The translations under genes were made by a program, and so were the position numbers. The notes beneath the pieces are model-generated. The model ran no database searches, was not told where the DNA came from, and saw only the letters and a program-made list of their open reading frames with translations. This document shows positions 1 through 59,894 of a stretch of DNA of 64,000 nucleotides, piece after piece (position 1 is the first letter of the stretch; the number at the start of each line of letters is the position of its first letter). This DNA is from Rebecca billardiae RCC1528 (Eukaryota > Protista > Haptophyta), in contig OZ251239.1 in the NCBI GenBank assembly GCA_965240325.2, positions 620,001 through 684,000 of the forward strand, read 5' to 3'.

Positions 1-1011
1 AGGAGCCCAGTCCCAGAGTGTGATCACGCCGGCTGCACCACGCGGCCTTCGTTCGGCATGCCGGGTGACGCGCGCGCCAGCCGGTGCGCCACGCACAAGC
101 TGGCCGGCATGGTCGACGTGAAGAACCTCGAGTGTGATCACGCCGGCTGCACCACGCGGCCTTCGTTCGGCATGCCGGGCGACGCGCGCGCCAGCCGGTG
201 CGCCACGCACAAGCTGGCCGGCATGGTCGACGTGGTGAACCGCAAGTGTGATCACGTCAGTTGCACCAAGGAGCCTTCGTTTGGCATGCCGGGCGACGCG
301 CGCGCCAGCCGGTGCGCTACGCACAAGCTGGCCGGCATGGTCGACGTGAGGAGCCCCAAGTGTGATCACGCTGGCTGCACCAAGCAGCCTTCATTCGGCA
401 TGCCGGGCGACGCGCGCGCCAGCCGGTGCGCTACGCACAAGCTGGCCGGCATGGTCGACGTGAGGAGCCCCAACTGTGATCACGCGGGCTGCACCAAGAA
501 GCCTTCATTCGGCATGCCGGGCGACGCGCGCGCCAGCCGGTGCGCTACGCACAAGCTGGCCGGCATGGTTGATAGTCGTCTCGCCGTCCCCAAGCGCAGG
601 CTGGAGCATGGCACGGATGGCACCGGCGACCAGGGCACGCGCGCCGCGAAGCGACGGCACAAACCCACCAGCTGCGTTGCCGCTGTTTCGGACGCCGCGC
701 CGCAGCTTTCACCACCGCCGCCGCTGGTCCCTGTCAGCATCGTCCGCTGGCGCTCGCCAGATGGCACGATCCATTCGGTTGACGACGGGGTGGTCAATAA
801 TGGTGTCTCAGTCTGGGCCCTGGACGAGCGGTATCAGCGTGGCAACGCAGGTGAGAACGCAATCCGGGCTGCCCATGCCGGCCATGGAATCACTACGACC
901 AGGGTCTACCAGCACGCATCAACACCACAGCGGTGCCAGCACTACCGCCGTCACCATCGATGGTGGTGGGAGCAGCACGCCGGCAGCAACAGCCGGACAT
1001 CCCTGTGGTGA
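1..1011 (+). CDS. EsV-1-7-type Cys-rich repeat protein, paralogue 1 (5 repeats; start just before the window; tail frameshifted)
   Basis: Frame is open from base 1 (RSPVPECDHAGC...). Five 38-aa C-X4-C-X16-C-X2-H-X12 repeats, then the DSRLAVPKRR tail. A 2-bp insertion near 891 (ggaatCActacg vs ggaatctacg in copy 4) shifts the frame, giving a stop at 1011 instead of the family stop at 1047-1049. Confidence 0.8.
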   Translation, partial: RSPVPECDHAGCTTRPSFGMPGDARASRCATHKLAGMVDVKNLECDHAGCTTRPSFGMPGDARASRCATHKLAGMVDVVNRKCDHVSCTKEPSFGMPGDARASRCATHKLAGMVDVRSPKCDHAGCTKQPSFGMPGDARASRCATHKLAGMVDVRSPNCDHAGCTKKPSFGMPGDARASRCATHKLAGMVDSRLAVPKRRLEHGTDGTGDQGTRAAKRRHKPTSCVAAVSDAAPQLSPPPPLVPVSIVRWRSPDGTIHSVDDGVVNNGVSVWALDERYQRGNAGENAIRAAHAGHGITTTRVYQHASTPQRCQHYRRHHRWWWEQHAGSNSRTSLW

Positions 1012-1272
1012 TGGCCAGGAGGGCCAGGGTCCGGGACGCTGCAGGCTGATGAAGTCGCGTGAAGCGTGGCTGCATACCCCCATACTGTATCGTTTTGGCC
1101 CTTTCAGAATTCAGGAAAATAAGGGTTTAGTGATCCCAACGTTGGCGGCTTGGCGCCATTTTGACGAATTTTCTCGCATCGCCACGAATATCCTTGATGG
1201 TTCGGCCTGCCCCAGGCCGGGCGACGCGCGCGCCAGGCCGCCAGCCGGTGCGCTACGCACAAGCTTGCCGGC

Positions 1273-2772
1273 ATGGTCGACGTGAGGAGCCCCACGTGTG
1301 ATCACGCCGGTTGCATCAAGATGCCTTCGTTCGGCATGCCAGGCGACGCGCGCGCCAGCCGGTGCGCCACGCACAAGCTGGCCGGCATGGTCGACTTGAA
1401 GCACCCCATGTGTGATCACGTCAGTTGCACCAAGGAGCCTTCGTTCGGCATGCCGGGCGACGCGCGCGCCAGCCGGTGCGCTACGCACAAGCTGGCCGGC
1501 ATGGTCGACGTGAAGAGACCCAGCTGTGATCACGCCGGCTGCACCAAGCGGCCTTCGTTCGGCATGCCGGGCGACGCGCGCGCCAGCCGGTGCGCTACGC
1601 ACAAGCTGGCCGGCATGGTCGACGTGAGGAGCCCCAAGTGTGATCACGCTGGCTGCACCAAGCAGTCTTCATTCGGCATGCCGGGCGACGCGCGCGCCAG
1701 CCGGTGCGCTACGCACAAGCTGGCCGGCATGGTCGACGTGAGGAGCCCCAAGTGTGATCACGCTGGCTGCACCAAGCAGCCTTCATTCGGCATGCCGGGC
1801 GACGCGCGCGCCAGCCGGTGCGCTACGCACAAGCTGGCCGGCATGGTCGACGTGAGGAACCGCAAGTGTGATCACACCGGCTGCACCAAGAAGCCTTCAT
1901 TCGGCATGCCGGGCGACGCGCGCGCCAGCCGGTGCGCTACGCACAAGCTGGCCGGCATGGTCGACGTGAGGAGCCCCAAGTGTGATCACGCTGGCTGCAC
2001 CAAGCAGTCTTCATTCGGCATGCCGGGCGACGCGCGCGCCAGCCGGTGCGCTACGCACAAGCTGGCCGGCATGGTCGACGTGAGGAACCGCAAGTGTGAT
2101 CACACCGGCTGCACCAAGAAGCCTTCATTCGGCATGCCGGGCGACGCGCGCGCCAGCCGGTGCGCTACGCACAAGCTGGCCGGCATGGTTGATAGTCGGC
2201 TCGCCGTCCCCAAGCGCAGGCTGGAGCATGGCACCGGCGACCAGGGCACGCGCGCCGCGAAGCGACGGCACAAACCCACGAGCTGCGTTGCCGCTGTTTC
2301 GGACGCCGCGCCGCAGCTTTCACCACCGCCGCCGCTGGTCCCTGTCAGCATCGTCCGCTGGCGCTTGCCAGATGGCACTATCCATTCGGTTGACGACGGG
2401 GTGGTCAATGATGGTGTCTGGGCCCTGGACGAGCGGTATCAGCGTGGCAACGCAGGTGAGAACGCAGTCCGGGCTGCCCATGCCGGCCATGGCATCTACG
2501 ACCAGGGTCTACCAGCACGCATCAACACCACAGCGGTGCCAGCACTACCGTCACCATCGATGGTGGTGGGAGCAGCACGCCGGCAGCAACCGGCAGCTTC
2601 AAGCTCGGCGGAGGCGATGACTGCTAGTCTGCGCACGCAAGCGTCGATGGCAGAGGACTCTCTCACGACTATGGGGATGGTGGCATGCTCAGAGGTGCGC
2701 TTGGTAGTGTGCTTCGGCACGCAGCCCGCCGCCCGCATCAGCTCCGTCCGGGCCTGCTGCGGGACGGTTTGA
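1273..2772 (+). CDS. EsV-1-7-type repeat protein, paralogue 2 (8 repeats; C-terminus replaced by an insertion)
   Basis: ATG at 1273, 8 x 114 bp to 2184, shared tail to 2592, then read-through into inserted DNA. The displaced native end of the tail lies at 3378-3440. Confidence 0.8.
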   Translation: MVDVRSPTCDHAGCIKMPSFGMPGDARASRCATHKLAGMVDLKHPMCDHVSCTKEPSFGMPGDARASRCATHKLAGMVDVKRPSCDHAGCTKRPSFGMPGDARASRCATHKLAGMVDVRSPKCDHAGCTKQSSFGMPGDARASRCATHKLAGMVDVRSPKCDHAGCTKQPSFGMPGDARASRCATHKLAGMVDVRNRKCDHTGCTKKPSFGMPGDARASRCATHKLAGMVDVRSPKCDHAGCTKQSSFGMPGDARASRCATHKLAGMVDVRNRKCDHTGCTKKPSFGMPGDARASRCATHKLAGMVDSRLAVPKRRLEHGTGDQGTRAAKRRHKPTSCVAAVSDAAPQLSPPPPLVPVSIVRWRLPDGTIHSVDDGVVNDGVWALDERYQRGNAGENAVRAAHAGHGIYDQGLPARINTTAVPALPSPSMVVGAARRQQPAASSSAEAMTASLRTQASMAEDSLTTMGMVACSEVRLVVCFGTQPAARISSVRACCGTV

Positions 2773-3377
2773 GCCTGGCATGAGCCCGCCGTCGGCTCCG
2801 CGCGGTGGCAGCGGCCTATTCGGATGACCCAGCACGAATAGTGAACAAGGTACCCCCATATTGACACCACCCTGAATATATATTTAAACCCCACCCGCAT
2901 TGTATAATAAACGTGTAGGTAAGCGCATCATATATGCGGGTACGAGTGTCTGAGTCTCTAATTAAGTGATGGGTAACAGTGCGCTCGATATCTTGCAGAG
3001 TAGTTTCATTTCACCGCCCTCCACGCGCACTCATCCGGTGCCTACTAAAATTTAGCAAGTCCACCTTATTAATTTTTTGGGGGCGGGTTGCAACGGTTAT
3101 GAATAAGTAAGTACGTCCGACGACATACCGTCATTTAGCCGCCATAACAAGTCGTTGACGTTTGGCTGAATCTGTATGTGACACAGTGGCGCAGCTGGCG
3201 TGCGCGCACGACCGCGCGACGGCACGCGGAGTCGAGTTTTGGGTGCTTCTGACGGCTGGGCTGGGTTCCAGGACATATTTGTGGGTGCCTCCGCAAGCGC
3301 CACGCTCGTCAGACACCTGAATCGCATGGTTGTCGAAAATCATCACAATTCAGTGGGCTGCTGTCATGGACCCCCTA
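2593..3377. mobile_element. 785-bp insertion of unknown class in the 3' end of paralogue 2
   Basis: Absent from the other five copies and flanked by a direct CAACCG (2587-2592 and 3378-3383). Lower GC. No matching TIRs seen, although the right end ...CCCCCTA resembles a hAT terminus. Confidence 0.65.
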
Positions 3378-3632
3378 CAACCGCAGGACATGCCTGTGGT
3401 GATGGCCAGGAGGGCCAGGGTCCGCGACGCTGCAGGCTGATGAAGTCGTGAAGCGTGGCTGCTTATCGTTTTGGCCCTTTCAGGAAAAGGGTAAAGTATC
3501 ATCGCCTTCCGTAATGGCCCTGTAACGGCCGGCGGGTCGCTCTACCCCTCGCACAGCGAGGGGTGCTCGACCGTTTAACGCCCGTAACGGGACGGATTGG
3601 ATGCACCTGGTAAAGTATGATGGTGCGCTGGC

Positions 3633-5252
3633 CAGGGCATGATCGTAGTTGGGGCTAAGTAGTGCTACTTTGGTTTACTCAACTAAGTAGCGTCAACTAC
3701 TTAGCTACCTCGGTCGGCTCCCGGGCAAAGTAGTCGCAACTACTTAGCTACCGCTAGCTTTCCGGCTCCAGCCACAGTCAGGGACGTCCACTGACCCTAT
3801 GGGGGGGGTGCATTTAGACGAACCCCTGGGAGCCAGGGAGCGATGAGGGTACCAATCGAAAGATCTCCGGGGCGGCGGACGAAGCCGCAGGTTCAAAACC
3901 GAAGCCGCAGACGATTTCGTATGTTTCCTTGTCCTTGAACGCGTCGTCACAGTCGAACACGGAGGACTCCATCCGCCATCGTGCTGAACTTTTTTTTGGG
4001 CTCCCGGACCGGTCTCTCGCACGATGGAGCGCCGCCGAGCGGGCGAGGAGACGAGACGTCTTGGAGGCCTTGATCCGGGCGCATCCGCTGGTTGGCCGCG
4101 GCACCCTGTCGCGCTCGCGCCCCGGGTGCACCTTCGTGCACTGAGAGTCACCGATGGGCGAGAAGCTGCTCGTCGACTCGAGCAAGCTGCGCGCTGTCCG
4201 CGTCGAGCTGCTCGCGCCGGCGCGGCCGCGCCTTGAGCTCGCGGCGGTGCGGGCGTGCGCATGAGCTTGTCGGCGTCGAGCTGCTCGCGCCCCGGGCCGC
4301 GCCCGCGCCGTCAGCTCGTAGTGGCACGGGCATGCGCACGAGCTCGTGCTTGGCTGCAGCTCCTCGGAGGACTGCCACAGCTGGCTGGCTCAGAGCCTTC
4401 GGTTCGCGAGTGCTGAGGTGCTTCGTGGCCTGCGCGGTGCGCCGCAGCGGTCAATGCGTTGCTCGATCCTGCACTGCGCTACGTCTTGACTCGCACGGGA
4501 GGCGCTGATATCGGGGCTGTGTGCAATGCGTCATGGCCGCCCGGCGCAGAGCCGACGCCGCACGACGCAGCCCTCAGCGCCAACACCGCGCAGCGAACAC
4601 TCGGTCTGCTATGCGAATTCTGGCGAGTTGGGGCCTTATTGAGGCGTATTTGGTCCTTCGATCGGCTGGGGGGAGCCCCCCCCAGACCCCCCCAAATGGT
4701 TAAATGCACCCCTGCTGGACGTCCCGGACAGTGACCAGAGCCTTCCGACTCGACCAGCTGAGTGAGTAGTCGTGGCTACTTCACTACGTAGAGTACTACG
4801 TAGTCGACTAGGTAGCTGAGCCGTGAGCGAGCACGGACCACCGCGCGGGCGCGAATCAGCGAGTCGCGACGAGACTCCCGTCATTCACCCGAGCCCGGCC
4901 GAGAATCGAGATCATCAGTTCATCAGAGCCCCGACTGCCGCCGCCAGAGGCATGGACCCGTCATGTCCTGTCACCTTTGCGCGCGCGCCGACTGCTATTC
5001 GGTCGCCGCCGCGCCGCCGCTGCACCGCCTGCACGCCGCCGCCCCCGGCCCGGCCAGCTAGGCACGGCGACTACGTAGGTGTACGTAGTGGCTACGTAGT
5101 CCAACTACTTAGCTACCTCAGTCGGCACCCCGGGCAAACAGTAGTCAGCGGCTACCCGTATGAGCTAATACCGCCAGTCCTGGAACCGAGTGAAGTAGTG
5201 ATGGCTACTTACGCAACTACTTAGTAAGTAAAGGTTTACCTACCATGCCCTG
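3633..5252. mobile_element. Non-autonomous hAT-like DNA transposon
   Basis: Termini CAGGGCATG...CATGCCCTG, perfect 8-bp TSD GCGCTGGC (3625-3632 and 5253-5260), and reiterated subterminal ACTACTTAGCTAC/GTAGT motifs near both ends. No transposase ORF recognised. Confidence 0.85.
3779..4727. mobile_element. Nested non-autonomous TIR element with 5-bp TSD (hAT5-like)
   Basis: Ends CAGGGACGTCCA...TGGACGTCCCGG with an inner GGGGTGCATTTA/TAAATGCACCCC inverted pair; direct ACAGT at 3774-3778 and 4728-4732. Confidence 0.75.
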
Positions 5253-5858
5253 GCGCTGGCGAGCGCTGGTCGCTGGACTCATTCTATGATTTAACGACAC
5301 AGGTAGGGGCGACGCGGGTCTCCTCCTTTCTCGGCGGCAGTGGCCCGTGGTGGTAGAGCATAGCCTGCACCGCGATCGTAAAGCTTGAGCGCGGCCTTGA
5401 GCTGCTGGAGCGCGATCCACCTGCGCTGCGCGGCTCGCATGGCCCTGCTGTGCCCCGAGCGAGGGCGATGGTGCAGGTCCGGATGTCAGCTGGCAGTCTC
5501 AGCCGCTGGTAGCAGCTGGTCGAGCCTGCCCCGTGCTCCCCGAGCGGTCGCGTACGCGCCTGCCGCTCGAGCCAGCTGGCTGGCTGGCGGCGGCTGGCGC
5601 TGCGGCATCGTCCAGGGTGCGCTTCGTCCGCTGCTGCGGCAGCTCCTCGTCGTCCAAGTCGTCGCCCGGGGGCGAGTCTCGGTCCTCGTGGAGCGGACTA
5701 CATCATGCATTCTTTGTAAACGTTGGCGCCATCATTTTCTCGCACCACGAATCCTTCGGGTTCGGCCCGCCCAACGACGGCAAGGGGAGTCCGCCCGCCC
5801 CGGCCGCCTGGGCGGCGCGCGCAAAGCCGGTGCGCCACGCACGCACAAGCTGTCCGGC

Positions 5859-7010
5859 ATGGTTGACGTGAAGCGCCGCAAGTGTGATCACGCCGGCTGC
5901 ACCAGGGTGCCTTCATTCGGCATGCCCGGCGACGCGCGCGCCAGCCGGTGCGCTACGCACACGCTGGCCGGCATGATCAACGTGAAGCACCCCAGCTGTG
6001 ATCACGCTGGCTGCACCAAGCAGCCTTCGTTCGGCATGCCGGGCGGCGCGCGCGCCAGCCGGTGCGCTACGCACAAGCTGGCCGGCATGGTCGACGTGAA
6101 GAGCCGCAAGTGTGATCACACCGGCTGCACCAAGGTGCCTTCATTCGGCATGCCGGGCGACGCGCGCGCCAGCCGGTGCGCTACGCACAAGCTGGCCGGC
6201 ATGGTCGACGTGGTGAGCCCCAGCTGTGATCACGCTGGCTGCACCAAGGTGCCTTCGTTCGGCATGCCGGGCGACGCGCGCGCCAGCCTGTGCGCTACGC
6301 ACAAGCTGGCCGGCATGGTTGACGTGAAGAGCCGCAAGTGTGATCACACCGGCTGCACCAAGGTGCCTCACTTCGGAATGCCGGGCGACGCGCGCGCCAG
6401 CCGGTGCGCTACGCACAAGCTGGCCAGCATGGTCGACGTGAGGAACCGCAAGTGTGATCACACCGGCTGCACCAAGAAGCCTTCATTCGGCATGCCGGGC
6501 GACGCGCGCGCCAGCCGGTGCGCTACGCACAAGCTGGCCGGCATGGTTGATAGTCGGCTCGCCGTCCCCAAGCGCAGGCTGGAGCATGGCACCGGCGACC
6601 AGGGCACGCGCGCCGCGAAGCGACGGCACAAACCCACCAGCTGCGTTGCCGCTGTTTCGGACGCCGCGCCGCAGCTTTCACCACCGCCGCCGCTGGTCCC
6701 TGTCAGCATCGTCCGCTGGCGCTCGCCAGATGGCACGATCCATTCGGTTGACGATGGGGTGGTCAATGATGGTGTCTGGGCCCCGGACGAGCGGTATCAG
6801 CGTGGCAACGCAGGTGAGAACGCAGTCCGGGCTGCCCATGCCGGCCATGGCATCTACGACCAGGGTCTACCAGCACGCATCAACACCACCGCGGTGCCAG
6901 CACTACCGCCGTCACCATCGATGGTGGTGGGAGCAGCACGCCGGCAGCAACCGCAGGACATACCTGTGGTGATGGCCAGGAGGGCCAGGGTCCGGGACGC
7001 TGCAGGCTGA
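5859..7010 (+). CDS. EsV-1-7-type repeat protein, paralogue 3 (6 repeats, intact tail)
   Basis: MVDV start at 5859, 6 x 114 bp to 6542, full tail ending RARVRDAAG-stop. Confidence 0.85.
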   Translation: MVDVKRRKCDHAGCTRVPSFGMPGDARASRCATHTLAGMINVKHPSCDHAGCTKQPSFGMPGGARASRCATHKLAGMVDVKSRKCDHTGCTKVPSFGMPGDARASRCATHKLAGMVDVVSPSCDHAGCTKVPSFGMPGDARASLCATHKLAGMVDVKSRKCDHTGCTKVPHFGMPGDARASRCATHKLASMVDVRNRKCDHTGCTKKPSFGMPGDARASRCATHKLAGMVDSRLAVPKRRLEHGTGDQGTRAAKRRHKPTSCVAAVSDAAPQLSPPPPLVPVSIVRWRSPDGTIHSVDDGVVNDGVWAPDERYQRGNAGENAVRAAHAGHGIYDQGLPARINTTAVPALPPSPSMVVGAARRQQPQDIPVVMARRARVRDAAG

Positions 7011-7078
7011 TGAAGTCGTGAAGCGTGGCTGCATAATCGTTTTGGCCCTTTCAGAATTCAGGAAAAGGGTTTAGTGAT

Positions 7079-8074
7079 AAGCCCATTTCACGTAACCAAC
7101 CTCCAATAGCTGGCGGGAGTCTGAACTACAAACAATTCTGTCCGAGCCGAGAGGAGTTTGGGGGGAGGGCCGGGGCGGTGAGCCGCGTTGCCAGCCGCTC
7201 GGTGGCGCCGCCGCCGAGGTCGTTTCCGCGTCACACATCGACGTGCGTCGGTGTGATGTGTCTTCATCGGGCGTGTGTGAGTACTTGCAGGGGCCCTGCA
7301 TTCCTTTAAGGCTCGGCATCGCACTCCTCCGAGTGTGCACGCTCGTCAACGCCGTGCCGTGCGACTGCCTGCGCGTGTGGGCTTACACGCCGGCAATGTA
7401 GGCGAGACGAGCGCGGCTGAGCGCCAAGAGATGGGCGCTTCCACGCGGGAGTAGTATGGTGCGAGGCCCCCGACCCCTTGCGCATCGGCTCGAAGCGCGC
7501 CTGAAGCACTGGGCACTCTCCTTCACAGTATTGTCTCCCCCATCCCAAGCTTAGCTAAAACACCGCAGAAGTCAGAACGACGTGTTTCTGCGATTTGGAC
7601 GATGGTGTGGTCATCGCGTGGGCAGCGGACAGACTCGCTACTTCAGCTCCAGGCGCGCTTCGAGCCGATGCGCGAGGGGTCGGGGGCCTCGCACCATACT
7701 ACTCCCGCGTGGAAGCGCCCATCTCTTGGCGCTCAGCCGCGCTCGTCTCGCCTACATTGCCGGCGTGTAAGCCCACACGCGCAGGCAGTCGCACGGCACG
7801 GCGTTGACGAGCGTGCACACTCGGAGGAGTGCGATGCCGAGCCTTAAAGGAATGCAGGGCCCCTGCAAGTACTCACACACGCCCGATGAAGACACATCAC
7901 ACCGACGCACGTCGATGTGTGACGCGGAAACGACCTCGGCGGCGGCGCCACCGAGCGGCTGGCAACGCGGCTCACCGCCCCGGCCCTCCCCCCAAACTCC
8001 TCTCGGCTCGGACAGAATTGTTTGTAGTTCAGACTCCCGCCAGCTATTGGAGGTTGGTTACGTGAAATGGGCTT
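7079..8074. mobile_element. Foldback element with ~425-bp terminal inverted repeats; probable AT TSD (ISL2EU-like)
   Basis: 7079-7503 is the near-perfect reverse complement of 7650-8074. The empty site GGTTTAGTGATCCCAAC is present in other spacers; here it reads GTG-AT-[AAGCCC...GGGCTT]-AT-CCC. The superfamily call is tentative. Confidence 0.85.
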
Positions 8075-8192
8075 ATCCCAACGTTGGCGGCTTGGCGCCA
8101 TTTTCTCGCATCGCCACGAATCCTTGGTTCGGCCTGCCGGGCGACGCGCGCGCCAGGCCGCCAGCCGGTGCGCCACGCACAAGCTGGCCGGC

Positions 8193-9362
8193 ATGGTCGA
8201 CGTGAGGAGCCCCACGTGTGATCACGCCGGCTGCACCACGTGGCCTTCGTACGGCACGCCGGGCGACGCGCGCCCCAGCCGGTGCGCCACGCACAAGCTG
8301 GCCGGCATGGTCGACTTGAAGCACCCCACGTGTGATCACGCTGGCTGCACCACGCGGCCTTCGTACGGCATGCCGGGCGACGCGCGCGCCAGCCGGTGCG
8401 CAACGCACAAACTGGTCGGCATGGCCAACGTGGTGAGCCCCAACTGTGATCACGCTGGCTGCACCACGTGGCCTTCGTACGGCATGCCGGGCGACGCGCG
8501 CGCCAGCCGGTGCGCTACGCACAAGCTGGCCGGCATGGTCGACGTGAAGAGCCGTAAGTGTGATCACGCTGGCTGCACCACGCGCCCTTTGTTCGGCATG
8601 CCGGGCGACGCGCGCGCCAGCCGGTGCGCTACGCACAAGCTGGCCGGCATGGTCGACATGGTGAGCCGCAAGTGTGATCACGCTGGCTGCACCAAGCAGC
8701 CTTCGTTCGGCATGCCGGGTGGCGCGCGCGCCAGCCGGTGCGCTACGCACAAGCTGGCCGGCATGGTTGACGTGAAGAGCCGCAAGTGTGATCACACCGG
8801 CTGCACCAAGAAGCCTTCATTCGGCATGCCGGGCGACGCGCGCGCCAGCCGGTGCGCTACGCACAAGCTGGCCGGCATGGTTGATAGTCGGCTCGCCGTC
8901 CCCAAGCGCAGGCTGGAGCATGGCACGGACGGCACCGGCGACCAGGGCACGCGCGCCGCGAATCGACGGCACAAACCCACCAGCTGCGTTGCCGCTGTTT
9001 CGGACGCCGCGCCGCAGCTTTCACCACCGCCGCCGCTGGTCCCTGTCAGCATCGTCCGCTGGCGCTCGCCAGATGGCACGATCCATTCGGTTGACGACGG
9101 GGTGGTCAATAATGGTGTCTCAGTCTGGGCCCTGGATGAGCGGTATCAGCGTGGCAACGCAGGTGAGAACGCAATCCGACGGGCTGCCCATGCCGGCCAT
9201 GGAATCTACGACCAGGGTCTACCAGCACGCATCAACACCACAGCGGTGCCAGCACTACCGCCGTCACCCTCGATGGTGGTGGGAGCAGCACGCCGGCAGC
9301 AACCGCAGGACATACCTGTGGTGATGGCCAGGAGGGCCAGGGTCCGGGACGCTGCAGGCTGA
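8193..9362 (+). CDS. EsV-1-7-type repeat protein, paralogue 4 (6 repeats, intact tail)
   Basis: MVDV start at 8193, 6 x 114 bp to 8876, full tail with in-frame 9-, 6- and 3-bp insertions. Confidence 0.85.
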   Translation: MVDVRSPTCDHAGCTTWPSYGTPGDARPSRCATHKLAGMVDLKHPTCDHAGCTTRPSYGMPGDARASRCATHKLVGMANVVSPNCDHAGCTTWPSYGMPGDARASRCATHKLAGMVDVKSRKCDHAGCTTRPLFGMPGDARASRCATHKLAGMVDMVSRKCDHAGCTKQPSFGMPGGARASRCATHKLAGMVDVKSRKCDHTGCTKKPSFGMPGDARASRCATHKLAGMVDSRLAVPKRRLEHGTDGTGDQGTRAANRRHKPTSCVAAVSDAAPQLSPPPPLVPVSIVRWRSPDGTIHSVDDGVVNNGVSVWALDERYQRGNAGENAIRRAAHAGHGIYDQGLPARINTTAVPALPPSPSMVVGAARRQQPQDIPVVMARRARVRDAAG

Positions 9363-10773: not shown

Positions 10774-12088
10774 GCTTGTCAGACAAACCCACGCTGGGCG
10801 GCCCCGCGCGTGCACGGCGCGATGGCGGCCTCACGCGGCGCGCTCGGACGCGCACCCACGGCCGCTGCGGGTGCGCGCGCGAGGTCGGCGCGGCTCAGGA
10901 CACCTGTGGGCCTGAATCGCGCGCGCTCCCACCCGACCTCGCCGCCCTCGCCGCGCGCAGGGCCCTGTTACTTTCGACGGGACACGCCCACGAGGCGTGC
11001 CCGCCGCGCGAGCGCGCGCGCGCGCGTGTGCCAGAGGCCCAATTAAGACGAGCCACGGCCTCTGCCCGATGGGCCTAGGTGTTGGCGCGTCGGCGAGCCC
11101 CCGCGCGCGACGATCGCCGCGCATACTCAGCGGAGATGAGCGGTTTTGTTGCTTGTTGAGCATATTGTTCGAACAGCTCAAATGCACATGTTACCGCATG
11201 GCACGTTCTCGGGCACCTGCTGCGTAGACAGTGCGCTCGACATGTGAGCGATCATCTGCAGGCTCGTGCACATCCCCGCTGATGGCGTGGTGTGGTCTGA
11301 TGTGGAGCAGGAAGGTGTCCACTGCTGCACGAAGATGGCCCGGTCAGGCTCGGGGCCCGCCGCATCGGCTCCGCCGGCTGGGCGCGGTAGTCACAGAGAG
11401 GTCGAGACACAGTGAGCGACGAAGCAGACCGCAAGGTAACAGGAGACGCAACGGACGTGCTAGTTCAGAAGTTGATCGAAGCTCCGGATGCGTACACATC
11501 CCCGAACTGTGCGACGCGGCGTGCCGGCGGCGCCGACCGACACGCCAGGGCTGTAATGACTGAGCCGGTTGCTGGCTGTCACGCGCGTGCGTGCGGCCTG
11601 ACCGACACCAGCATGGCTCAAGGCGCAGTAGTGATGTTCATCACTCTCAGGCTCACTCAGAGAAGCGAAAAAACGACCGTTGAATACCTCCACGCCGGCC
11701 CCGGTCATTGCTTGTCGGCCAGGCCGCACTGGCTGAGGAGCCGCGCGTCCCAGTCAGCAGGTCTCTGCGCGCAAATCGGGCGGCGAGGGCGTGGGACAAG
11801 GCGGCGCGATTGCTGCCATCGGGTCTTCTCGCCACCACGAGGCGCCCGCGCACGCCTGTCAAGCTCGTATGCGGCCTTGGGCGCGTTGCGCAGGCGGGCC
11901 ATCGCCGCCTCGCGTCGCCAGTGAACGCCATCCGCCGTTTGCGGCTGGGCGTCCGGCGCCGCCCGCGCACGCGCCACGCCTATTCAGCTACTCCCGGAAC
12001 ACACACCTTCCTTAGGCAGGTGTGTGTTCCGGGAGCCGTCTGCGCCTTCCGGACTTTTGTGGCCCCAGCGTGGGTTTGTCTGACAAGC
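10774..12088. mobile_element. Non-autonomous TIR element family X, copy A
   Basis: 25-bp TIR GCTTGTCAGACAAACCCACGCTGGG; flanked by TGTGA (5-bp TSD, or GTG 3-bp if the TIR is one base longer). The empty site is visible in the 23.2-kb copy of the host element. Confidence 0.88.
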
Positions 12089-12201
12089 TGTGAGGGCGCC
12101 CGGTAGTGAGCGAAGCGATTTTCTTTTCTTGGCGAGGCGATTTTCTTTTTCTTTTTCATTTTCTTATCTTTTTCCCGGGCACTACAAGGGGCGGACCTAC
12201 G

Positions 12202-13499
12202 GCTTGTCAGACAAACCCACGGGGGACGGCCCCGCGCGCGCACGGCGCGATGGCGGCCTCACGCGGCGCGCTCGGACGCGCACCCACGGCCGCTGCGGGT
12301 GCGCGCGCGAGGTCGGCGCGGCTCAAGACACCTATGGGGCTCAATCGCGCGCGCTCCCGCCCGCCCTCGCCGCCCTCGCCGCGCGCAGGGCCCGGCTACT
12401 TTCCGCGCGACGCGTCCAGGAGGCGGCCCGCCGCGCGAGAGCGCGCGCGCGCGTGTGCCAGAGGCCCAATTAAGATGAGCCACGGCCTCTGCCCGATGGG
12501 CCTAGGTGTTGGCGCATCGACGAGCCCCGGCGCGCGACGATGCCCGCGCGTACTCAGCGGAGATGAGCGGTTTTGTTGCTTGTTGAGCATATTGTTCGAA
12601 CAGCTCAATGCACATGTTGCTGCAGAGTGCGTTCTCGGGCACCTGCTGGCCGTAGACAGTGCGCTCGACCTGTGAGCGATCGTCTGCAGGCTCGTGTGCG
12701 CCCACGCTGGTGGCGTGGTGTGGTCCGATCTGGAGCAGGAAGGTGTCCACTGCTGCACGAAGAAGGCCGGTCACGGCTGTGAGTCCCGAGCCGGTCGCCG
12801 CGCCGCCGCGCCGCCATTCGTACACGGTAGGGCGATCGAGGCATGAGCGACGAAGCAGACCGCAAGGTATCGGGAGAAGACGCAACCGATGTGCTAGCCT
12901 AGTTGTTGGTCGAGGCTATGCGTGTAGAAGCAGCACTGACTGAATTGGCGGCGCCGGGCCGCACGGTGTCTCGCTGGCCTGTCAGCTGTCACACATGCGT
13001 GCGGTCTCGGACTGATGCCAGCATGGCTCAAGGCGCAGCGGTGATGCTAGTACTCTCAGGCCCCTCGCACAGAAGCGAAAGAACCCGACCGTTGAGTACC
13101 TGAGGGGTGCACGCGTGCCGACCATCATGCTCATCGGGCCGTGAGGCCTTCCAATCCGTAGAGCCGCGCGTGCCAGTCAGCAGGTCTTTGCGCGCATAAA
13201 GGGTGACGAGAGCGTGGACAAGGCGGCGGAAATGCTGCCATCGGGTCTTCTCGCCACCACGAGGCGCCCGCGCACGGCCGTCAAGCTCGTATGCGGCCCT
13301 GGGCGCGTGGCGTAGACGGGCCCTCGCGTCGCCCAGTGAGCGCCATCCCGCCGTTGGGGCTGGCGTCCGCAGCCCGCGCACGCGCGACGCCTATTCGATG
13401 CGCACCGGACGACCCCCCTCCCTTAGGAAGGGGGGTCGTCCGGTTGCTGATCTGCGCTTCCCGGACATTCTGCCGCCACCGTGGGTTTGTCTGACAAGC
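12202..13499. mobile_element. Non-autonomous TIR element family X, copy B
   Basis: 21-bp TIR GCTTGTCAGACAAACCCACGG; flanked by CTACG (or TAC). Colinear with copy A but visibly diverged. Empty site GGACCTACGGCCC on the minus strand at ~23167-23179. Confidence 0.88.
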
Positions 13500-13534
13500 C
13501 TACGGCCCGCCATTCAGGAAAAGGCGGGTTTAGT

Positions 13535-14662
13535 CAAGGGCGGTAAGGGCTGTCAACTCCCAGTGGCGGCAGCGCCAGAGGTTGGTTCCCGCTTCGCTGC
13601 TGCGCGGCCTCGCTCCAGCGACTAACTCTCGTGGGCGCCCGCCCTGGAGGGCGAGTGGGGCGCGCACGGCGCGAGCTCCTGCGGCCGTGTACGCGCGCGC
13701 GGAGGCGGCGCGCGCGGCTGGGCAGGTGCTAGGGAGTGCATGTCGCCCTCCCACGCCGCGCGCCTTGCTCGCCGCCGCTGTCGCCGCGCCTCAGGCCAGC
13801 GCGCACGCGTGCGCCGCCTCCAGAGCCAGCCTCGGGCCCGCGGCAGCTGGCCGCGCGCGTGTGGTGCGCGGTCTGGTCGGCGCGAGTCGGTCGGGGCCAT
13901 CGGGCGAGGTTCGCATACTATAGACGCGCGCTCTGCCGCCGCGCGCCGCCGCGCATGGGCCCGGTACCATCCCGTGAAGCTGTTGAAGGAAGCTGATCGA
14001 TGAATGCACGACAAGCAGAAATGAGCTCGAACACGCGACAGTGAGCGCCCATGCGCGTGATAGGCGGCCGCATTGGGTGCGTGTACGGCGTCCAATGAGT
14101 GCATTGCCCCGCTCTCCATCGCCTGCGCTCGTCTGTTGTGCTCTTCAGCGTCTCCATGAGCGTCCAAACATGAGCATTTTCGCATTCGTGCTGCAGTTCG
14201 TGTCAGACCTAAGATGCTTGCGTGTCGACCCATGACAACCGTGCGCGGCGGCGCGCGGCGGCAGAGCGCGCGTCTATAGTATGCGAACCTCGCCCGATGG
14301 CCCCGACCGACTCGCGCCGACCAGACCGCGCACCACACGCGCGCGGCCAGCTGCCGCGGGCCCGAGGCTGGCTCTGGAGGCGGCGCACGCGTGCGCGCTG
14401 GCCTGAGGCGCGGCGACAGCGGCGGCGAGCAAGGCGCGCGGCGTGGGAGGGCGACATGCACTCCCTAGCACCTGCCCAGCCGCGCGCGCCGCCTCCGCGC
14501 GCGCGTACACGGCCGCAGGAGCTCGCGCCGTGCGCGCCCCACTCGCCCTCCAGGGCGGGCGCCCACGAGAGTTAGTCGCTGGAGCGAGGCCGCGCAGCAG
14601 CGAAGCGGGAACCAACCTCTGGCGCTGCCGCCACTGGGAGTTGACAGCCCTTACCGCCCTTG
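13535..14662. mobile_element. P-superfamily (Galileo-like) foldback element with 421-bp TIRs
   Basis: 13535-13955 is the reverse complement of 14242-14662. Termini CAAGGG...CCCTTG; 7-bp TSD GTTTAGT (13528-13534 and 14663-14669). CA..TG ends, long TIRs and a 7-bp TSD are Galileo/P hallmarks. Confidence 0.85.
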
Positions 14663-14802
14663 GTTTAGTGATCCCAACGTTGGCGGCTTGGCGCCATTTT
14701 CTCGCATCGCCACGAATATCCTTGGTTCGGCAGCCTCTGCCCCAGGCCGGGCGACGCGCGCGCCAGGCCGCCAGCCGGTGCGCCACGCACAAGCTTGCCG
14801 GC

Positions 14803-16635
14803 ATGGTCGACGTGAGGAGCCCAGAGTGTGATCACGCCGGCTGCACCACGTGGCCTTCGTACGGCATGCCGGGCGACGCGCGCGCCAGCCGGTGCGCCAC
14901 GCACAAGCTGGCCGGCATGGTCGACGTGAAGAACCTCGAGTGTGATCACGCCGGCTGCACCACGCGGCCTTCGTTCGGCATGCCGGGCGACGCGCGCGCC
15001 AGCCGGTGCGCCACGCACAAGCTGGCCGGCATGGTCGACGTGGTGAACCGCAAGTGTGATCACGTCAGTTGCACCAAGGAGCCTTCGTTTGGCATGCCGG
15101 GCGACGCGCGCGCCAGCCGGTGCGCTACGCACAAGCTGGCCGGCATGGTCGACTTGAAGCACCCCAAGTGTGATCACGTCAGTTGCACCAAGGAGCCTTC
15201 GTTCGGCATGCCGGGCGACGCGCGCGCCAGCCGGTGCGCTACGCACAAGCTGGCCGGCATGGTCGACGTGAAGAGCCGCAAGTGTGATCACACCGGCTGC
15301 ACCAAGGTGCCTTCATTCGGCATGCCGGGCGACGCGCGCGCCAGCCGGTGCGCTACGCACAAGCTGGCCGGCATGGTCGACGTGGTGAGCCCCAGCTGTG
15401 ATCACGCTGGCTGCACCAAGCAGCCTTCGTTCGGCATGCCGGGTGACGCGCGCGCCAGCCGGTGCGCTACGCACAAGCTGGCCGGCATGGTCGACGTGAT
15501 GAACCGCAAGTGTGATCACGCTGGCTGCACCAAGCGGCCTTTGTACGGCATGCCGGGTGGCGCGCGCGCCAGCCGGTGCGCTACGCACAAGCTGGCCGGC
15601 ATGGTCGACTTGAAGCACCCCAAGTGTGATCACGTCAGTTGCACCAAGGAGCCTTCGTTCGGCATGCCGGGCGACGCGCGCGCCAGCCGGTGCGCTACGC
15701 ACAAGCTGGCCGGCATGGTCGACGTGAAGAGCCGCAAGTGTGATCACACCGGCTGCACCAAGGTGCCTTCGTTCGGCATGCCGGGCGACGCGGGCGCCAG
15801 CCGGTGCGCTACGCACAAGCTGGCCAGCATGGTCGACGTGGTGAGCCGCAAGTGTGATCACGCTGGCTGCACCAAGCAGCCTTCGTTCGGCATGCCGGGC
15901 GGCGCGCGCGCCAGCCTGTGCGCTACGCACAAGCTGGCCGGCATGGTCGACTTCAAGCACCCCAAGTGTGATCACACCGGCTGCACCAAGGTGCCTTCAT
16001 TCGGCATGCCGGGCGACGCGCGCGCCAGCCGGTGCGCTACGCACAAGCTGGCCAGCATGGTCGACGTGAAGAACCGCAAGTGTGATCACACCGGCTGCAC
16101 CAAGAAGCCTTCATTCGGCATGCCGGGCGACGCGCGCGCCAGCCGGTGCGCTACGCACAAGCTGGCCGGCATGGTTGATAGTCGGCTCGCCGTCCCCAAG
16201 CGCAGGCTGGAGCATGGCACCGGCGACAAGGGCACGCGCGCCGCGAAGCGACGGCACAAACCCACCAGCTGCGTTGCCGCTGTTTCGGACGCCGCGCCGC
16301 AGCTTTCACCACCGCCGCCGCTGGTCGATGTCAGCATCGTCCGCTGGCGCTCGCCAGATGGCACGATCCATTCGGTTGACGACGGGGTGGTCAATGATGG
16401 TGTCTGGGCCCTGGACGAGCGGTATCAGCGTGGCAACGCAGGTGACAACGCAGTCTGGGCTGCCCATGCCGGCCATGGCATCTACGACCAGGGTCTACCA
16501 GCACGCATCAACACCACAGCTGCGCCAGCACTACCGTCACCATCGATGGTGGCGGGAGCAGCACGCCGGCAGCAACCGCAGGACATACCTGTGGTGATGG
16601 CCAGGAGGGCCAGGGTCCGCGACGCTGCAGGCTGA
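14803..16635 (+). CDS. EsV-1-7-type repeat protein, paralogue 5 (12 repeats, intact tail)
   Basis: MVDV start at 14803, 12 x 114 bp to 16170, full tail. Confidence 0.85.
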   Translation: MVDVRSPECDHAGCTTWPSYGMPGDARASRCATHKLAGMVDVKNLECDHAGCTTRPSFGMPGDARASRCATHKLAGMVDVVNRKCDHVSCTKEPSFGMPGDARASRCATHKLAGMVDLKHPKCDHVSCTKEPSFGMPGDARASRCATHKLAGMVDVKSRKCDHTGCTKVPSFGMPGDARASRCATHKLAGMVDVVSPSCDHAGCTKQPSFGMPGDARASRCATHKLAGMVDVMNRKCDHAGCTKRPLYGMPGGARASRCATHKLAGMVDLKHPKCDHVSCTKEPSFGMPGDARASRCATHKLAGMVDVKSRKCDHTGCTKVPSFGMPGDAGASRCATHKLASMVDVVSRKCDHAGCTKQPSFGMPGGARASLCATHKLAGMVDFKHPKCDHTGCTKVPSFGMPGDARASRCATHKLASMVDVKNRKCDHTGCTKKPSFGMPGDARASRCATHKLAGMVDSRLAVPKRRLEHGTGDKGTRAAKRRHKPTSCVAAVSDAAPQLSPPPPLVDVSIVRWRSPDGTIHSVDDGVVNDGVWALDERYQRGNAGDNAVWAAHAGHGIYDQGLPARINTTAAPALPSPSMVAGAARRQQPQDIPVVMARRARVRDAAG

Positions 16636-16755
16636 TGAAGTCGTGAAGCGTGGCTGCGCCTATCGTTTTGGCCCTTTCAGAATTCATCAGGAAATAGTAA
16701 TCCCAACCCTTGGCGGCTTGGCGCGCCATTTTCTCGCATCGCCACGCCGATAATC

Positions 16756-16800
16756 TCGCCTGCCTGAGCTGTGTGCGTCTCTTATTCTTAGTAAACTGTA
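16756..16800 (+). repeat. 45-bp direct repeat, second copy at 18227-18271; possible solo transposon end
   Basis: TCGCCTGCCTGAGCTGTGTGCGTCTCTTATTCTTAGTAAACTGTA occurs on both sides of paralogue 6 and ends in ...CTG|TA like a Tc1/mariner right end. Confidence 0.7.
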
Positions 16801-16889
16801 CAGGCTGCTATGTATCCTTGCTGGTTCGGCCTGCCGGGCGACGCGCGCGCCAGGCCGCCAGCCGGTGCGCCACGCACAAGCTGGCCGGC

Positions 16890-18155
16890 ATGGTCGACGT
16901 GAGGAGCCCCAAGTGTGATCACGCCGGCTGCACCACGCGGCCTTCGTACGGCATGCCGGGCGACGCGCGCGCCAGCCGGTGCGCCACGCACAAGCTGGCC
17001 GGCATGGTCGACTTGAAGCACCCCAAGTGTGATCACGCCGGCTGCACCACGCGGCCTTCGTTCGGCATGCCGGGCGACGCGCGCGCCAGCCGGTGCGCTA
17101 CGCACAAGCTGGCCGGCATGGTCGACATGGTGAGCCCCAGCTGTGATCACGCTGGCTGCACCAAGCGGCCTTCGTTCGGCATGCCGGGTGACGCGCGCGC
17201 CAGCCGGTGCGCTACGCACAAGCTGGCCGGCATGGTCGACGTGGTGAGCCCCAGCTGTGATCACGCTGGCTGCACCAAGCGGCGTTCGTTCGGCATGCCG
17301 GGTGACGCGCGCGCCAGCCGATGCGCTACGCACAAGCTGGCCGGCATGGTTGACGTGAAGAGCCGCAAGTGTGATCACACCGGCTGCACCAAGGTGCCTT
17401 CATTCGGCATGCTGGGCGACGCGCGCGCCAGCCGGTGCGCCACGCACAAGCTGGCCGGCATGGCCAACGTGGTGAGCCGCAAGTGTGATCACGCTGGCTG
17501 CACCAAGCAGCCTTCGTTCGGCATGCCGGGTGACGCGCGCGCCAGCCGGTGCGCCACGCACAAGCTGGCCGGCATGGTCGACGTGGTGAACCGCAAGTGT
17601 GATCACACCGGCTGCACCAAGGTGCCTTCGTACGGCATGCCGGGCGACGCGCGCGCCAGCCGGTGCGCTACTCACAAGCTGGCCGGCATGGTTGATAGTC
17701 GGCTCGCCGTCCCCAAGCGCAGGCTGGAGCATGGCACCGGCGACCAGGGCACGCGCGCCGCGAAGCGACGGCACAAACCCACCAGCTGCGTTGCCGCTGT
17801 TTCGGACGCCGCGCCGCAGCTTTCCCCACCGCCGCCGCTGGTCCCTGTCAGCATCGTCCGCTGGCGCTCGCCAGATGGCACGATCCATTCGTATGACGAC
17901 GGGGTGGTCAATGATGGTGTCTGGGCCCTGGACGAGCGGTATCAGCGTGGCAGCGCAGGTGATAACGCAGTCCGGGTTGCCCATGCCGGCCATGGCATCT
18001 ACGACCAGGGTCTACCAGCACGCATCAACACCACAGCGGTGCCAGCACTACCGCCGTCACCATCGATGGTGGTGGGAGCAGCACGCCGGCAGCAACCGCA
18101 GGACATACCTGTGGTGATGGCCAGGAGGGCCAGGGTCCGCGACGCTGCAGGCTGA
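16890..18155 (+). CDS. EsV-1-7-type repeat protein, paralogue 6 (7 repeats, intact tail)
   Basis: MVDV start at 16890, 7 x 114 bp to 17687, full tail. Confidence 0.85.
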   Translation: MVDVRSPKCDHAGCTTRPSYGMPGDARASRCATHKLAGMVDLKHPKCDHAGCTTRPSFGMPGDARASRCATHKLAGMVDMVSPSCDHAGCTKRPSFGMPGDARASRCATHKLAGMVDVVSPSCDHAGCTKRRSFGMPGDARASRCATHKLAGMVDVKSRKCDHTGCTKVPSFGMLGDARASRCATHKLAGMANVVSRKCDHAGCTKQPSFGMPGDARASRCATHKLAGMVDVVNRKCDHTGCTKVPSYGMPGDARASRCATHKLAGMVDSRLAVPKRRLEHGTGDQGTRAAKRRHKPTSCVAAVSDAAPQLSPPPPLVPVSIVRWRSPDGTIHSYDDGVVNDGVWALDERYQRGSAGDNAVRVAHAGHGIYDQGLPARINTTAVPALPPSPSMVVGAARRQQPQDIPVVMARRARVRDAAG

Positions 18156-18280
18156 TGAAGCAGTCGTGAAGCGTGGCTGCCTATTGTTTGGCCCTCTCTG
18201 CAGGAAAATATGATGGCCAAAAGGATTCGCCTGCCTGAGCTGTGTGCGTCTCTTATTCTTAGTAAACTGTATGGGGGTAT

Positions 18281-24479: not shown

Positions 24480-24632
24480 TGGTCCTGCTCGGCTCCCCGC
24501 GAGCACGCGGGTTGCGGCGAGGCGCGCCTGGCGCGGAGGTGGCGACCGGTCGCCCCCGACGCGCGTCGGCTTCGCCAGCTGAGCGGCCGCCCGGCTGGTC
24601 ATCGTCCTTCATCGCGTCCAGCGAAAGCGGAC

Positions 24633-27449: not shown

Positions 27450-27493
<44 letters not shown>

Positions 27494-29686: not shown

Positions 29687-29727
<41 letters not shown>

Positions 29728-31688: not shown

Positions 31689-32099
31689 GCGGGGGCGAGG
31701 GGCGGGCGGCGCGGCCGCTCGGCGCGGCGCGCGCGGACGCGTGCGAGCATGGGGCGGCGGCGTTTGGGGAGGGACTGTCGGGATGGTTTGTGGACGGGCG
31801 CCATCGTGGGCCGAAAGCCCGAAACATCCGCCGCCGTGGCCACCGTCCGCTCCCTTTCTTGGGAGGGCTGTTCCGCATATGAACGAAGTTTGGTCTTCGC
31901 GCCGGTTGGATCTGAAACGACGTACTTCCTCCGCTGCCAGCTGGCCTTTGACGCGCGCCATAAGCCGTTATGTGCGCGCATTTCAGACTATCCAGCCGAC
32001 AGTCTTCCCGCGCGCGTATTTTGCTCGTTTCGGGCGCGCGCGCACGCTACAAAGCTTGACGAACGACGCAGGCTCGACGCGTCCGCACCCTCCCGCCGC

Positions 32100-52372: not shown

Positions 52373-52584
52373 CGCGCGCTCGGCCGCTCGCGGGCGATTT
52401 TGATCGCGGGATATTTCCGCGGGCGGCGCGGAAATACAAAAGATGGCAGCGCGCGAAAAGACACGTCCCGCCGTTACGCTTCGGGGGACTGCGTGCGCCT
52501 ACTCGGCCGGTGCAGCGTTCCGGGTGCGCGGAGTGAAGCGGCGGGTGCGACCGGTTATTAGAAGAGCAGCGGCGCAGCACCACC

Positions 52585-59862: not shown

Positions 59863-59894
<32 letters not shown>

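Follow-up and report, generated by a model that had tools for sequence, protein, structure and literature searches.

A cluster of EsV-1-7 array genes in the haptophyte Rebecca billardiae and its putative kinship with nuclease-fused proteins of giant viruses

A cluster of tandem array genes

Among the largest gene families of brown algae is that of the EsV-1-7 domain, to which the developmental regulator IMM belongs; the domain is also widespread in giant viruses. No ligand of the domain is named in the literature that we found. Here, we describe a cluster that adds to this already known family, at the start of a 64,000-nt stretch (the window) of the Rebecca billardiae genome. A regular-expression scan of the six reading frames recovers 44 C-x4-C-x16-C-x2-H units between nt 19 and 17,675, all on the + strand and held by six + strand genes with 5-12 head-to-tail modules each. 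Within every array the units, of 38 amino acids (aa), follow each other at exactly 114 nt, and TRF reports 114-nt arrays with 89-93% matches. The count of 44 repeats of 38 aa in the original prediction is therefore exact. Its six-gene cluster is also seen, as six arrays; copy 1 is truncated by the window edge, and six is a lower bound.

Copy 1 (1..1011, +) has five EsV-1-7 modules, ending at nt 564, and a tail (565-1011) in which a +2-nt frameshift near nt 890 alters the last ~40 residues. Copy 2 (1273..2772, +) is preceded by a conserved leader (1136..1272, +), made of a spacer motif and a degenerate half-module with an 8-nt insertion. Its eight modules (1273-2184) are followed by a tail that leaves the family sequence after about nt 2590 and so ends in a different C-terminus. 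The tail is intact in copy 3 (5859..7010, +; six modules, 5859-6542), where it measures 155 aa, in copy 4 (8193..9362, +; six modules, 8193-8876), where it carries three in-frame indels (+9, +6 and +3 nt), in copy 5 (14803..16635, +; 12 modules, 14803-16170) and in copy 6 (16890..18155, +; seven modules, 16890-17687). Conserved leaders precede copy 4 (8078..8192, +) and copy 5 (14674..14802, +), the leader of copy 3 has diverged, and that of copy 6, which directly adjoins copy 5, contains a ~64-nt insertion. The first in-frame ATG conserved across all copies encodes the Met of the first module. A long open reading frame from nt 5385, upstream of copy 3, is probably spurious. The spacers between copies are strewn with repeat insertions and foldbacks.

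The tail, C-terminal to the array, is basic, about 155 residues long, lineage-specific and endowed with an NLS-like motif; a database search found no homologue of it. Four of its five indels are multiples of 3, and its pN/pS is 0.64 at a pS of 0.03-0.04. All genes had been said to end in a common NLS-like tail: the basic tail is present, but copy 4 reads NRRHK instead of KRRHK and the tails of copies 1 and 2 are damaged.

A constant scaffold with three variable blocks

All six products are recognised by the Pfam model PF19114 (EsV_1_7_cys), at E-values between 6e-66 and 9e-173 and scores of 218-560 bits (gathering threshold, 25 bits), which bears out the assignment to the EsV-1-7 family. Column statistics were computed on the 43 complete units; the first unit, for which the original prediction gives a 2-aa insertion, is truncated at the window edge. 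C9, D10, H11, C14, C31 and H34 are invariant and use a single codon each; C9, C14, C31 and H34 presumably hold one zinc per module. Nine codons vary, in three blocks (residues 4-8, 12-13 and 16-17), and the others are nearly invariant. Entropy peaks at residue 17 (2.59 bits), followed by residues 8, 5, 6, 12 and 7. Residues 21-38 show rare variants and a few synonymous polymorphisms, at codons 24 and 32. Both the concentration of variation in the three blocks and the near-invariance of residues 21-38 down to the DNA level had been predicted, and the column statistics agree. Correct as well were the residue-17 strings, R-R-E-Q-K, M-E-R-Q-Q-K-Q-K and V-Q-V-V-V-K in copies 1-3, and W-R-W-R-Q-K, W-R-E-E-V-Q-R-E-V-Q-V-K and R-R-R-R-V-Q-V in copies 4-6, so that the picture of an unchanging Cys/His framework, few hypervariable residues and arrays that differ in module number is supported. 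The set at residue 17 includes V, W and M, which are atypical as base readers. Net charge amounts to +2.6 to +3.5 per module, and the arrays have a pI of 9.3-9.6.

The three blocks are strongly linked (mutual-information permutation p <= 2e-4) and form 31 signatures among the 43 units: VS is paired with KE, TG with KV or KK, and T16 with R or W at residue 17. An AlphaFold2 (AF2) model of the array, of moderate confidence (pLDDT 72.6, pTM 0.35), predicts small beta/loop zinc knuckles and not the helices of TALE or PPR repeats. In its DSSP register residues 2-3 pair with 20-21, which would make residues 5-8 and 16-17 face each other across a single hairpin at the knuckle. A search for solved structural relatives of the array returned only weak matches to LIM, PHD and GATA-type fingers (E > 1). 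The C2H2 finger model PF00096 has no Pfam match in the products, and the model contains no recognition helix.

Exchange and selection in the arrays

The evolution of the arrays is that of coding minisatellites, with 114 nt as the unit. Identical units recur across genes (by copy and module, 1.2=5.2, 1.3=5.3, 1.4=2.5, 2.6=2.8=3.6 and 3.3=5.5), and module diversity within a gene equals that between genes. The first and last module types nevertheless keep fixed places, which suggests context dependence. Unequal exchange or gene conversion moves modules of a common pool, both inside a gene and from one gene to another, and leaves the end modules in place. All changes in array length are whole 114-nt units, and no frameshift or stop was found within the 44 modules.

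Amino-acid change is concentrated in 14 residues that surround the first zinc knuckle. The nine variable codons have a pairwise dN/dS of 2.2, against 0.29 for the remaining 29, and omega from events counted along a minimum spanning tree is 1.95 and 0.35, respectively (Fisher p 1e-5); since the variable codons were picked after inspection of the data and recombination inflates event counts, an omega above 1 is suggestive rather than proof. CpG mutation bias is not the explanation, because CGG hardly varies at R30 and does vary at residue 17. The module outside the variable codons is under purifying selection, and the nonsynonymous excess within them is compatible with functional diversification. 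The dN/dS check proposed with the original prediction, applied to the repeats of this cluster, thus returns about 2 at the variable codons and about 0.3 elsewhere, with sites chosen post hoc.

Nuclease-fused relatives in giant viruses

Among the 120 best database relatives, 103 have their EsV-1-7 arrays fused to a common C-terminal domain, in which D, E-x-D-E-x-x-H, R and R-x-N-P are invariant. The AF2 model of this domain has a pLDDT of 88, and its top 50 Foldseek matches in the PDB are all PD-(D/E)xK nucleases, led by I-Bth0305I (Z 8.2) and Vsr (Z 7.1); as modelled, the domain folds like Vsr/EDxHD homing endonucleases. Matches in BFVD, down to E 3e-20, are giant-virus proteins annotated as endonuclease, DUF559, group I intron endonuclease or C2H2-type domain proteins. 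The nuclease family comprises 7,856 cluster representatives, and 135 of its 145 top new matches carry EsV-1-7 motifs, a few having C2H2/C2HC fingers instead. Nuclease-fused relatives hold 1 to 13 modules (5 to 12 in the window genes), and the positions that vary most within arrays of distant relatives are 17, 6, 19 and 5 (17, 5 and 6 in the window).

No such domain was detected here: comparison of the tail with the profile of the nuclease gives a probability of 0.9%, and the best six-frame match in the whole window has E 0.28. Because the window genes lack the nuclease, any function is transferred from fused relatives whose arrays are at most 59% identical.

Possible function of the cluster

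We give a probability of roughly 0.5 to the reading that the cluster consists of EsV-1-7 array genes for nuclear nucleic-acid binders, the nuclease-less kin of giant-virus fusions. Since EsV-1-7 modules precede a DNA-cutting domain in giant viruses, those of the window probably read DNA. Each module would add contacts through its variable patch, so that different strings of modules could read different sequences. The window genes would then be cellular relatives, without nuclease, of giant-virus proteins, a very large family whose arrays appear to aim a Vsr/EDxHD-type endonuclease. The original prediction had proposed sequence-specific nucleic-acid readers of TALE/PPR-like design, possibly directed against viruses or transposons. 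The first part gains from relatives in which arrays are fused to a Vsr/EDxHD-type nuclease that otherwise sits on C2H2 fingers. A TALE-like code gains no support, given the linked blocks and the fixed end modules, and the predicted beta/loop fold departs from TALE and PPR helices. The window shows no sign of a role against viruses or transposons.

A strict TALE-like code, with one or two residues per module that would read a single base or a fixed short word whatever the neighbouring modules, so that arrays could be rewired freely, nevertheless has several features in its favour. The modules are near-identical and vary most at residue 17 (2.59 bits), as they also do in the arrays of distant relatives, arrays differ in module number (5 to 12 in the window genes, 1 to 13 in relatives fused to the nuclease), and an NLS-like tail is present. 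Such a code is unlikely, as nine positions vary in three significantly linked blocks, the fixed end module types indicate context dependence and the AF2 model has no helical repeat fold. The arrays might instead read single-stranded RNA, like RanBP2-type or CCHC knuckles, with a viral partner that acts on RNA. Their modules are indeed basic zinc knuckles, and Vsr-like folds are reported for RNA-binding RAP/FASTK proteins (PMC11879112). We consider this very improbable: the best structural matches of the viral domain, I-Bth0305I and Vsr, are DNA enzymes, its viral homologues are annotated as endonuclease, DUF559 or intron endonuclease or carry C2H2 fingers, and the tail resembles an NLS and not an organellar targeting signal.

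Modules of this kind could also form a scaffold for proteins or other non-nucleic-acid partners, as in LIM, RING or PHD domains, with the patch diversifying partner choice. No biochemical function is described for any EsV-1-7 protein in the literature that we found, brown-algal members act in development with no DNA target described, and the weak fold matches of the array are LIM, PHD and GATA-type fingers (E > 1). The strong positive charge of the arrays, and the fact that in most relatives they occupy the slot of DNA-binding C2H2 fingers in the same nuclease family, make this improbable. Finally, the genes may be functionless or selfish relics, recently amplified remnants of viral endonucleases without the nuclease, in which minisatellite instability and relaxed constraint mimic hypervariability. 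The tail is damaged in two copies of six (1 and 2), it lacks a detected homologue and its pN/pS of 0.64 indicates weak constraint, and the spacers contain repeat insertions and foldbacks. Yet the constant codons have a dN/dS of about 0.3, all 44 modules are free of frameshift or stop, array length shifts by full 114-nt modules and most tail indels keep the frame. Relaxed constraint moreover predicts an omega of ~1, not ~2, and no sparing of 29 of the 38 codons, so that relics appear highly unlikely.

Returning to nucleic-acid binders, a bolder and rather doubtful version would place EsV-1-7 arrays beside C2H2 fingers and TALEs, as the third class of modular DNA readers in nature whose units can be re-ordered. 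Modules would specify short DNA words via residues 5-8 and 16-17, giant viruses would use them to aim homing-type nucleases, and nuclease-less copies would have been domesticated in algae, to serve as nuclear regulators or genome-surveillance factors that evolve fast. If so, the shuffled paralogues and the viral array-nuclease proteins would suffice to work out the code. The cluster constitutes a natural experiment: scaffold and tail are common to the paralogues, and nearly all differences concern how many modules there are, how they are ordered and which residues occupy the few variable positions. The link to viral Vsr-type nucleases turns DNA targeting into a testable hypothesis and offers a route to array-target pairs. 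Modular DNA reading would explain this large family of algae and giant viruses and add a scaffold for programmable DNA binding; otherwise, the cluster is an ordinary, fast-evolving tandem gene family.

Comparison with known systems

The window genes have the C-x4-C-x16-C-x2-H-x12 head-to-tail motif of the EsV-1-7 family (EsV-1-7 of the Ectocarpus virus, Ectocarpus IMMEDIATE UPRIGHT and the expanded brown-algal family), together with its tandem gene clusters and absence of any other Pfam domain. They differ from it in their host, a very GC-rich haptophyte and not a brown alga, in modules that are near-identical at the DNA level, vary at ~9 codons and are common to paralogues, and in the orphan C-terminal tail with its NLS-like motif. 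Viral proteins that combine an array with a Vsr-like nuclease (chlorovirus MT325 M427R, metagenomic P0019/P0008) have the same scaffold and residue 17 as the most variable position, but their arrays are <=59% identical to those of the window, they carry a ~190-aa C-terminal PD-(D/E)xK domain that the window genes lack, and they sit in compact, virus-like gene contexts. The conserved E/D/H residues of I-Bth0305I/EDxHD enzymes and Vsr correspond to those of the viral domain, and I-Bth0305I has the same layout of an N-terminal DNA-binding region and a C-terminal nuclease, built with NUMOD/HTH elements where the viral relatives use zinc-finger arrays.

TALE effectors likewise consist of near-identical tandem repeats with few hypervariable residues, a variable repeat number and an NLS-like element C-terminal to the array. 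However, the TALE repeat is a 34-aa (33-35 aa) helical unit and varies at one di-residue, whereas the window unit is a 38-aa zinc knuckle of predicted beta/loop fold, with nine linked variable positions and a polar module order. The C2H2 arrays of PRDM9 and KRAB proteins are also coding minisatellites of near-identical zinc modules subject to unequal exchange, with paralogues or alleles that differ in module number and order, and with few changing positions per module at which dN exceeds dS (the window sites having been chosen post hoc). The window modules are C2-C-H with a 16-residue loop and, as predicted, no beta-beta-alpha helix, and the genes have no KRAB or SET partner domain and no PF00096 match. 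With its linked variable blocks and polar arrays, the design looks closer to PRDM9 arrays than to TALEs, and the recognition rule, judged on these data, seems nearer to that of PRDM9/KRAB arrays, in which several linked residues of a module set specificity, than to the di-residue code of TALEs.

EsV-1-7 arrays and family membership

The cysteine-rich EsV-1-7 motif has been described as perhaps a novel zinc-finger class. In brown algae it is strongly expanded, occurring in tandem clusters, and it includes IMM; its origin is probably viral. The literature describing the motif gives no biochemical function for it, and no tie to a nuclease or to haptophytes emerged from our literature search, outside which the original 2017 paper (Macaisne et al.) lies. 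The window genes are bona fide members of this family, as the original prediction had proposed: all six products match the Pfam model PF19114 (EsV_1_7_cys) with scores of 218–560 bits, far above its 25-bit threshold. A six-frame regular-expression search of the 64-kb window found exactly 44 C-x4-C-x16-C-x2-H units, all on the forward strand and located between nt 19 and ~17,700. Within each of the six arrays the units are spaced by exactly 114 nt; copies 1–6 hold 5 (the window edge truncates this array), 8, 6, 6, 12 and 7 units, respectively, and Tandem Repeats Finder also recovered the 114-nt arrays, at 89–93% identity. Open reading frames are weak proof of coding here, as other frames of this GC-rich repeat are open as well; the coding status of arrays and tails is instead judged from dN/dS, indel phase and the Pfam match.

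Each unit of the cluster is made of three parts, a leader, an array and a tail, and copies 1 and 2, like copies 5 and 6, abut directly. The conserved leader (~115–135 nt) combines a spacer motif, located at 1136, 8078 and 14674, with a degenerate half-module that an 8-nt insertion has thrown out of frame. Only one in-frame ATG is kept in all copies, namely the first-module Met. The tail (~155 residues) carries the basic, NLS-like PKRR...KRRHK motif and is followed by a short conserved 3' stretch. Tails are intact in copies 3–6; in copy 1 the tail is frameshifted by +2 nt near nt 890, and in copy 2 it leaves the family sequence after ~nt 2590. Of five indels in the tails, four have a length divisible by three, and tails differ between copies with pS 0.03–0.04 and pN/pS 0.64, which argues that the tail is translated in the PKRR...KRRHK frame yet weakly constrained. 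It belongs to no family in Pfam or PHROGs, and a region-restricted database search with the tail returned no homologue at E ≤ 1e-3. A sequence of ~45 nt (GCCTGCCTGAGCTGTGTGCG...AAACTGTA) lies at 16760–16830 in the copy 6 leader and again at 18210–18260, just past the stop codon, so that direct repeats bracket this copy.

Spacers and genomic neighbourhood

Two perfect foldbacks interrupt the cluster. That between copies 3 and 4 (7076–8077) has 432-nt arms (7076–7507 and 7646–8077) that are 100% complementary around a 138-nt loop, and its right arm stops exactly where the copy 4 leader motif starts (8078); candidate explanations are a foldback element, a break-formed palindrome or an assembly artefact. 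The other (13535–14662), unrelated to it in sequence, has 424-nt arms (13535–13958 and 14239–14662; 100%) and a 280-nt loop, and ends 12 nt upstream of the copy 5 leader motif. Copies of a GGTTTAGT-like spacer motif are present on both of its flanks, and the same spacer motif is found at both unrelated foldbacks. A ~1.43-kb tandem duplication (10774–13630), whose two copies are 74–96% identical in blocks, also occupies part of the long spacer that separates copies 4 and 5. No Pfam family matches the ORFs of this duplication or any of eight ORFs examined in the spacers (nt 2496–14461).

The genes neighbouring the cluster look cellular: they encode an RCC1-repeat protein (31749–33659), a prolyl-hydroxylase-like ShK-domain 2OG-Fe(II) oxygenase (48533–50302) and a GT47 exostosin-type glycosyltransferase (60702–62174). 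No giant-virus hallmark gene was found among the window ORFs tested. GC content reaches 75–82% at 24000–31700 and 52400–60200, and two long high-GC ORFs on the forward strand, of ~2,460 codons (24303–31688) and ~2,510 codons (52585–60126), may encode low-complexity proteins or be spurious.

Variable positions and array evolution

Column statistics over the 43 complete units upheld the picture of a constant scaffold bearing a few variable residues that was drawn in the original prediction, whose residue-17 strings all proved correct. C9, D10, H11, C14, C31 and H34 are invariant and use one codon each, and variation in residues 21–38 is limited to rare singletons and a few synonymous polymorphisms. 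Entropy is highest at residue 17 (2.59 bits), followed by residues 8, 5, 6, 12 and 7. The arrays are strongly basic, with a net charge of +2.6 to +3.5 per module and a pI of 9.3–9.6. The modular, shuffled and hypervariable design of the genes is unusually clean.

Selection was assessed on the window units. Pairwise Nei-Gojobori estimates of dN/dS were 2.2 at the nine variable codons (3.7 against the constant-site dS) and 0.29 at the remaining 29. Changes counted on a minimum spanning tree that joined the 35 distinct units gave an omega of 1.95 for variable codons (binomial p 0.007) and 0.35 for constant codons (p 7e-5), a contrast with a Fisher p of 1e-5. This nonsynonymous excess is a suggestive signal of diversification rather than proof of it, because the class of variable codons was set after the data had been seen and recombination renders the events non-independent. 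A mutational explanation of the hypervariability is unlikely. CpG bias is rejected as its source, because the constant half is just as CpG-rich and stable: CGG at R30 is altered in 3 of 43 units, whereas at residue 17 this codon is altered in 34 of 43. There is also linkage among the three variable blocks, their mutual information lying above nearly all of 5,000 permutations (p ≤ 2e-4); VS is paired with KE, TG with either KV or KK, and T16 with R17 or W17. This linkage argues against a simple one-residue code.

The 43 units represent 35 distinct types at the DNA level and, at the variable positions, 31 signatures. Identical 114-nt units are shared between genes (with 1.2 denoting the second module of copy 1: 1.2=5.2, 1.3=5.3, 1.4=2.5, 2.6=2.8=3.6 and 3.3=5.5) and, in two cases, recur inside one gene (2.4=2.7 and 5.4=5.8). 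The mean nucleotide difference is equal within and between genes (10.3 versus 10.8). First modules are nearest to other first modules (T16 with W or R17, Y20), and the last module has K16-K17 in five of six arrays, four of these with TG-KK; that of copy 6 is TG-KV. Synonymous divergence among modules (~0.08–0.10) is two to three times that of the gene tails, so the module types are older than the gene duplications. On these comparisons the arrays behave as a coding minisatellite that keeps a positional polarity while unequal exchange and conversion reshape it.

Predicted structure and nuclease-fused relatives

For the copy 4 array of six modules, AlphaFold2 gave a model of moderate confidence (pLDDT 72.6, pTM 0.35) that predicts small beta/loop knuckles arranged as beads on a string, with a one-turn helix at C-x2-H. 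Because its DSSP register pairs residues 2–3 with 20–21, residues 5–8 would face residues 16–17 across the hairpin arms, with the first knuckle at the tip. Every PDB match to the array model in Foldseek had E > 1, and neither the array nor the C-terminal domain of its viral relatives has a sequence match among solved structures.

The best 120 database matches to copy 4 cover the array only, at ≤ 59% identity, and 103 of them have in common a C-terminal domain of ~190 residues. Pfam recognises no family in this domain (a NERD match is sub-threshold), in which D76, E89, D91, E92, H95, R106, R123, N125 and P126 are invariant among 38 diverse sequences. Its AlphaFold2 model is confident (pLDDT 87.9), and all 50 top Foldseek matches in the PDB are PD-(D/E)xK nucleases. 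The best structures on re-alignment were the homing endonuclease I-Bth0305I (3r3p, Z 8.2) and Vsr (1vsr, Z 7.1); the I-Bth0305I paper defined the Vsr-like EDxHD family with its catalytic E/D/H residues. On modelled structure and conserved residues, we assign the viral domain as a putative nuclease. Among predicted viral structures, giant-virus proteins match the model down to E 3e-20 and are annotated as endonuclease, DUF559 or group I intron endonuclease; the matches include EsV-1-115 and several C2H2-type zinc-finger proteins of mimivirus-, pithovirus-, marseillevirus- and raphidovirus-like viruses.

Searching 1.84 billion representatives with a profile of the domain found it in 7,856 clusters. 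One to thirteen EsV-1-7-like motifs were detected by regular expression in 133 of 145 new top matches, and by Pfam in two more; a few top matches carry C2H2/C2HC fingers instead (e.g. P0163, with PF22992 at E 1e-9). Within this nuclease family the array thus sits in the slot of classical DNA-binding fingers. In distant relatives the most variable array positions are 17, 6, 19 and 5, overlapping with 17, 5 and 6 of the window, and variability is correlated over all positions (Spearman rho 0.36, p 0.03).

Both genomic contexts of relatives that were inspected are compact and virus-like, one with DUF5767, a photolyase and a 5'-3' exonuclease and the other with a ribonucleotide reductase small subunit. 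P0019, the nearest nuclease-fused relative (59% identical array), comes from a compact contig of virus-like appearance (L002:1-11063), where its neighbour is a gene for the small subunit of ribonucleotide reductase. The GC content of this contig, 64–67%, is close to that of the window and unusually high by giant-virus standards. In five other relatives (P0011, P0014, P0030, P0033 and P0110), EsV-1-7 modules overlap matches to Pfam PF24906 (Zf_WRKY19), some above threshold, and atlas clusters named WRYK19 zinc finger are present in Nucleocytoviricota and diatoms. PF19114 and PF24906 may be homologous, which, if true, would matter for the claimed absence of EsV-1-7 from land plants.

Proposed recognition by array-plus-tail proteins

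A degenerate nuclease in the window is ruled out, as the tail matches the nuclease profile with a probability of 0.9% and no segment of the six-frame window scores better than E 0.28. The window genes are predicted to encode array-plus-tail proteins devoid of the nuclease domain. The same architecture is seen in P0045, a metagenomic protein (59% identical) with a basic motif and a proline-rich tail, and in a Coccomyxa protein with a Q/A-rich tail.

The exchange of EsV-1-7 arrays for classical fingers is the strongest argument that the array probably targets nucleic acid, most plausibly DNA. We give a probability of about 0.5 to the reading that the window proteins serve in nuclear recognition of nucleic acid, probably DNA, with specificity set around the first zinc knuckle. 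A strict programmable code is improbable. Under the nuclear-recognition reading, nucleic-acid recognition would be closer to that of PRDM9-type arrays than to that of TALEs.
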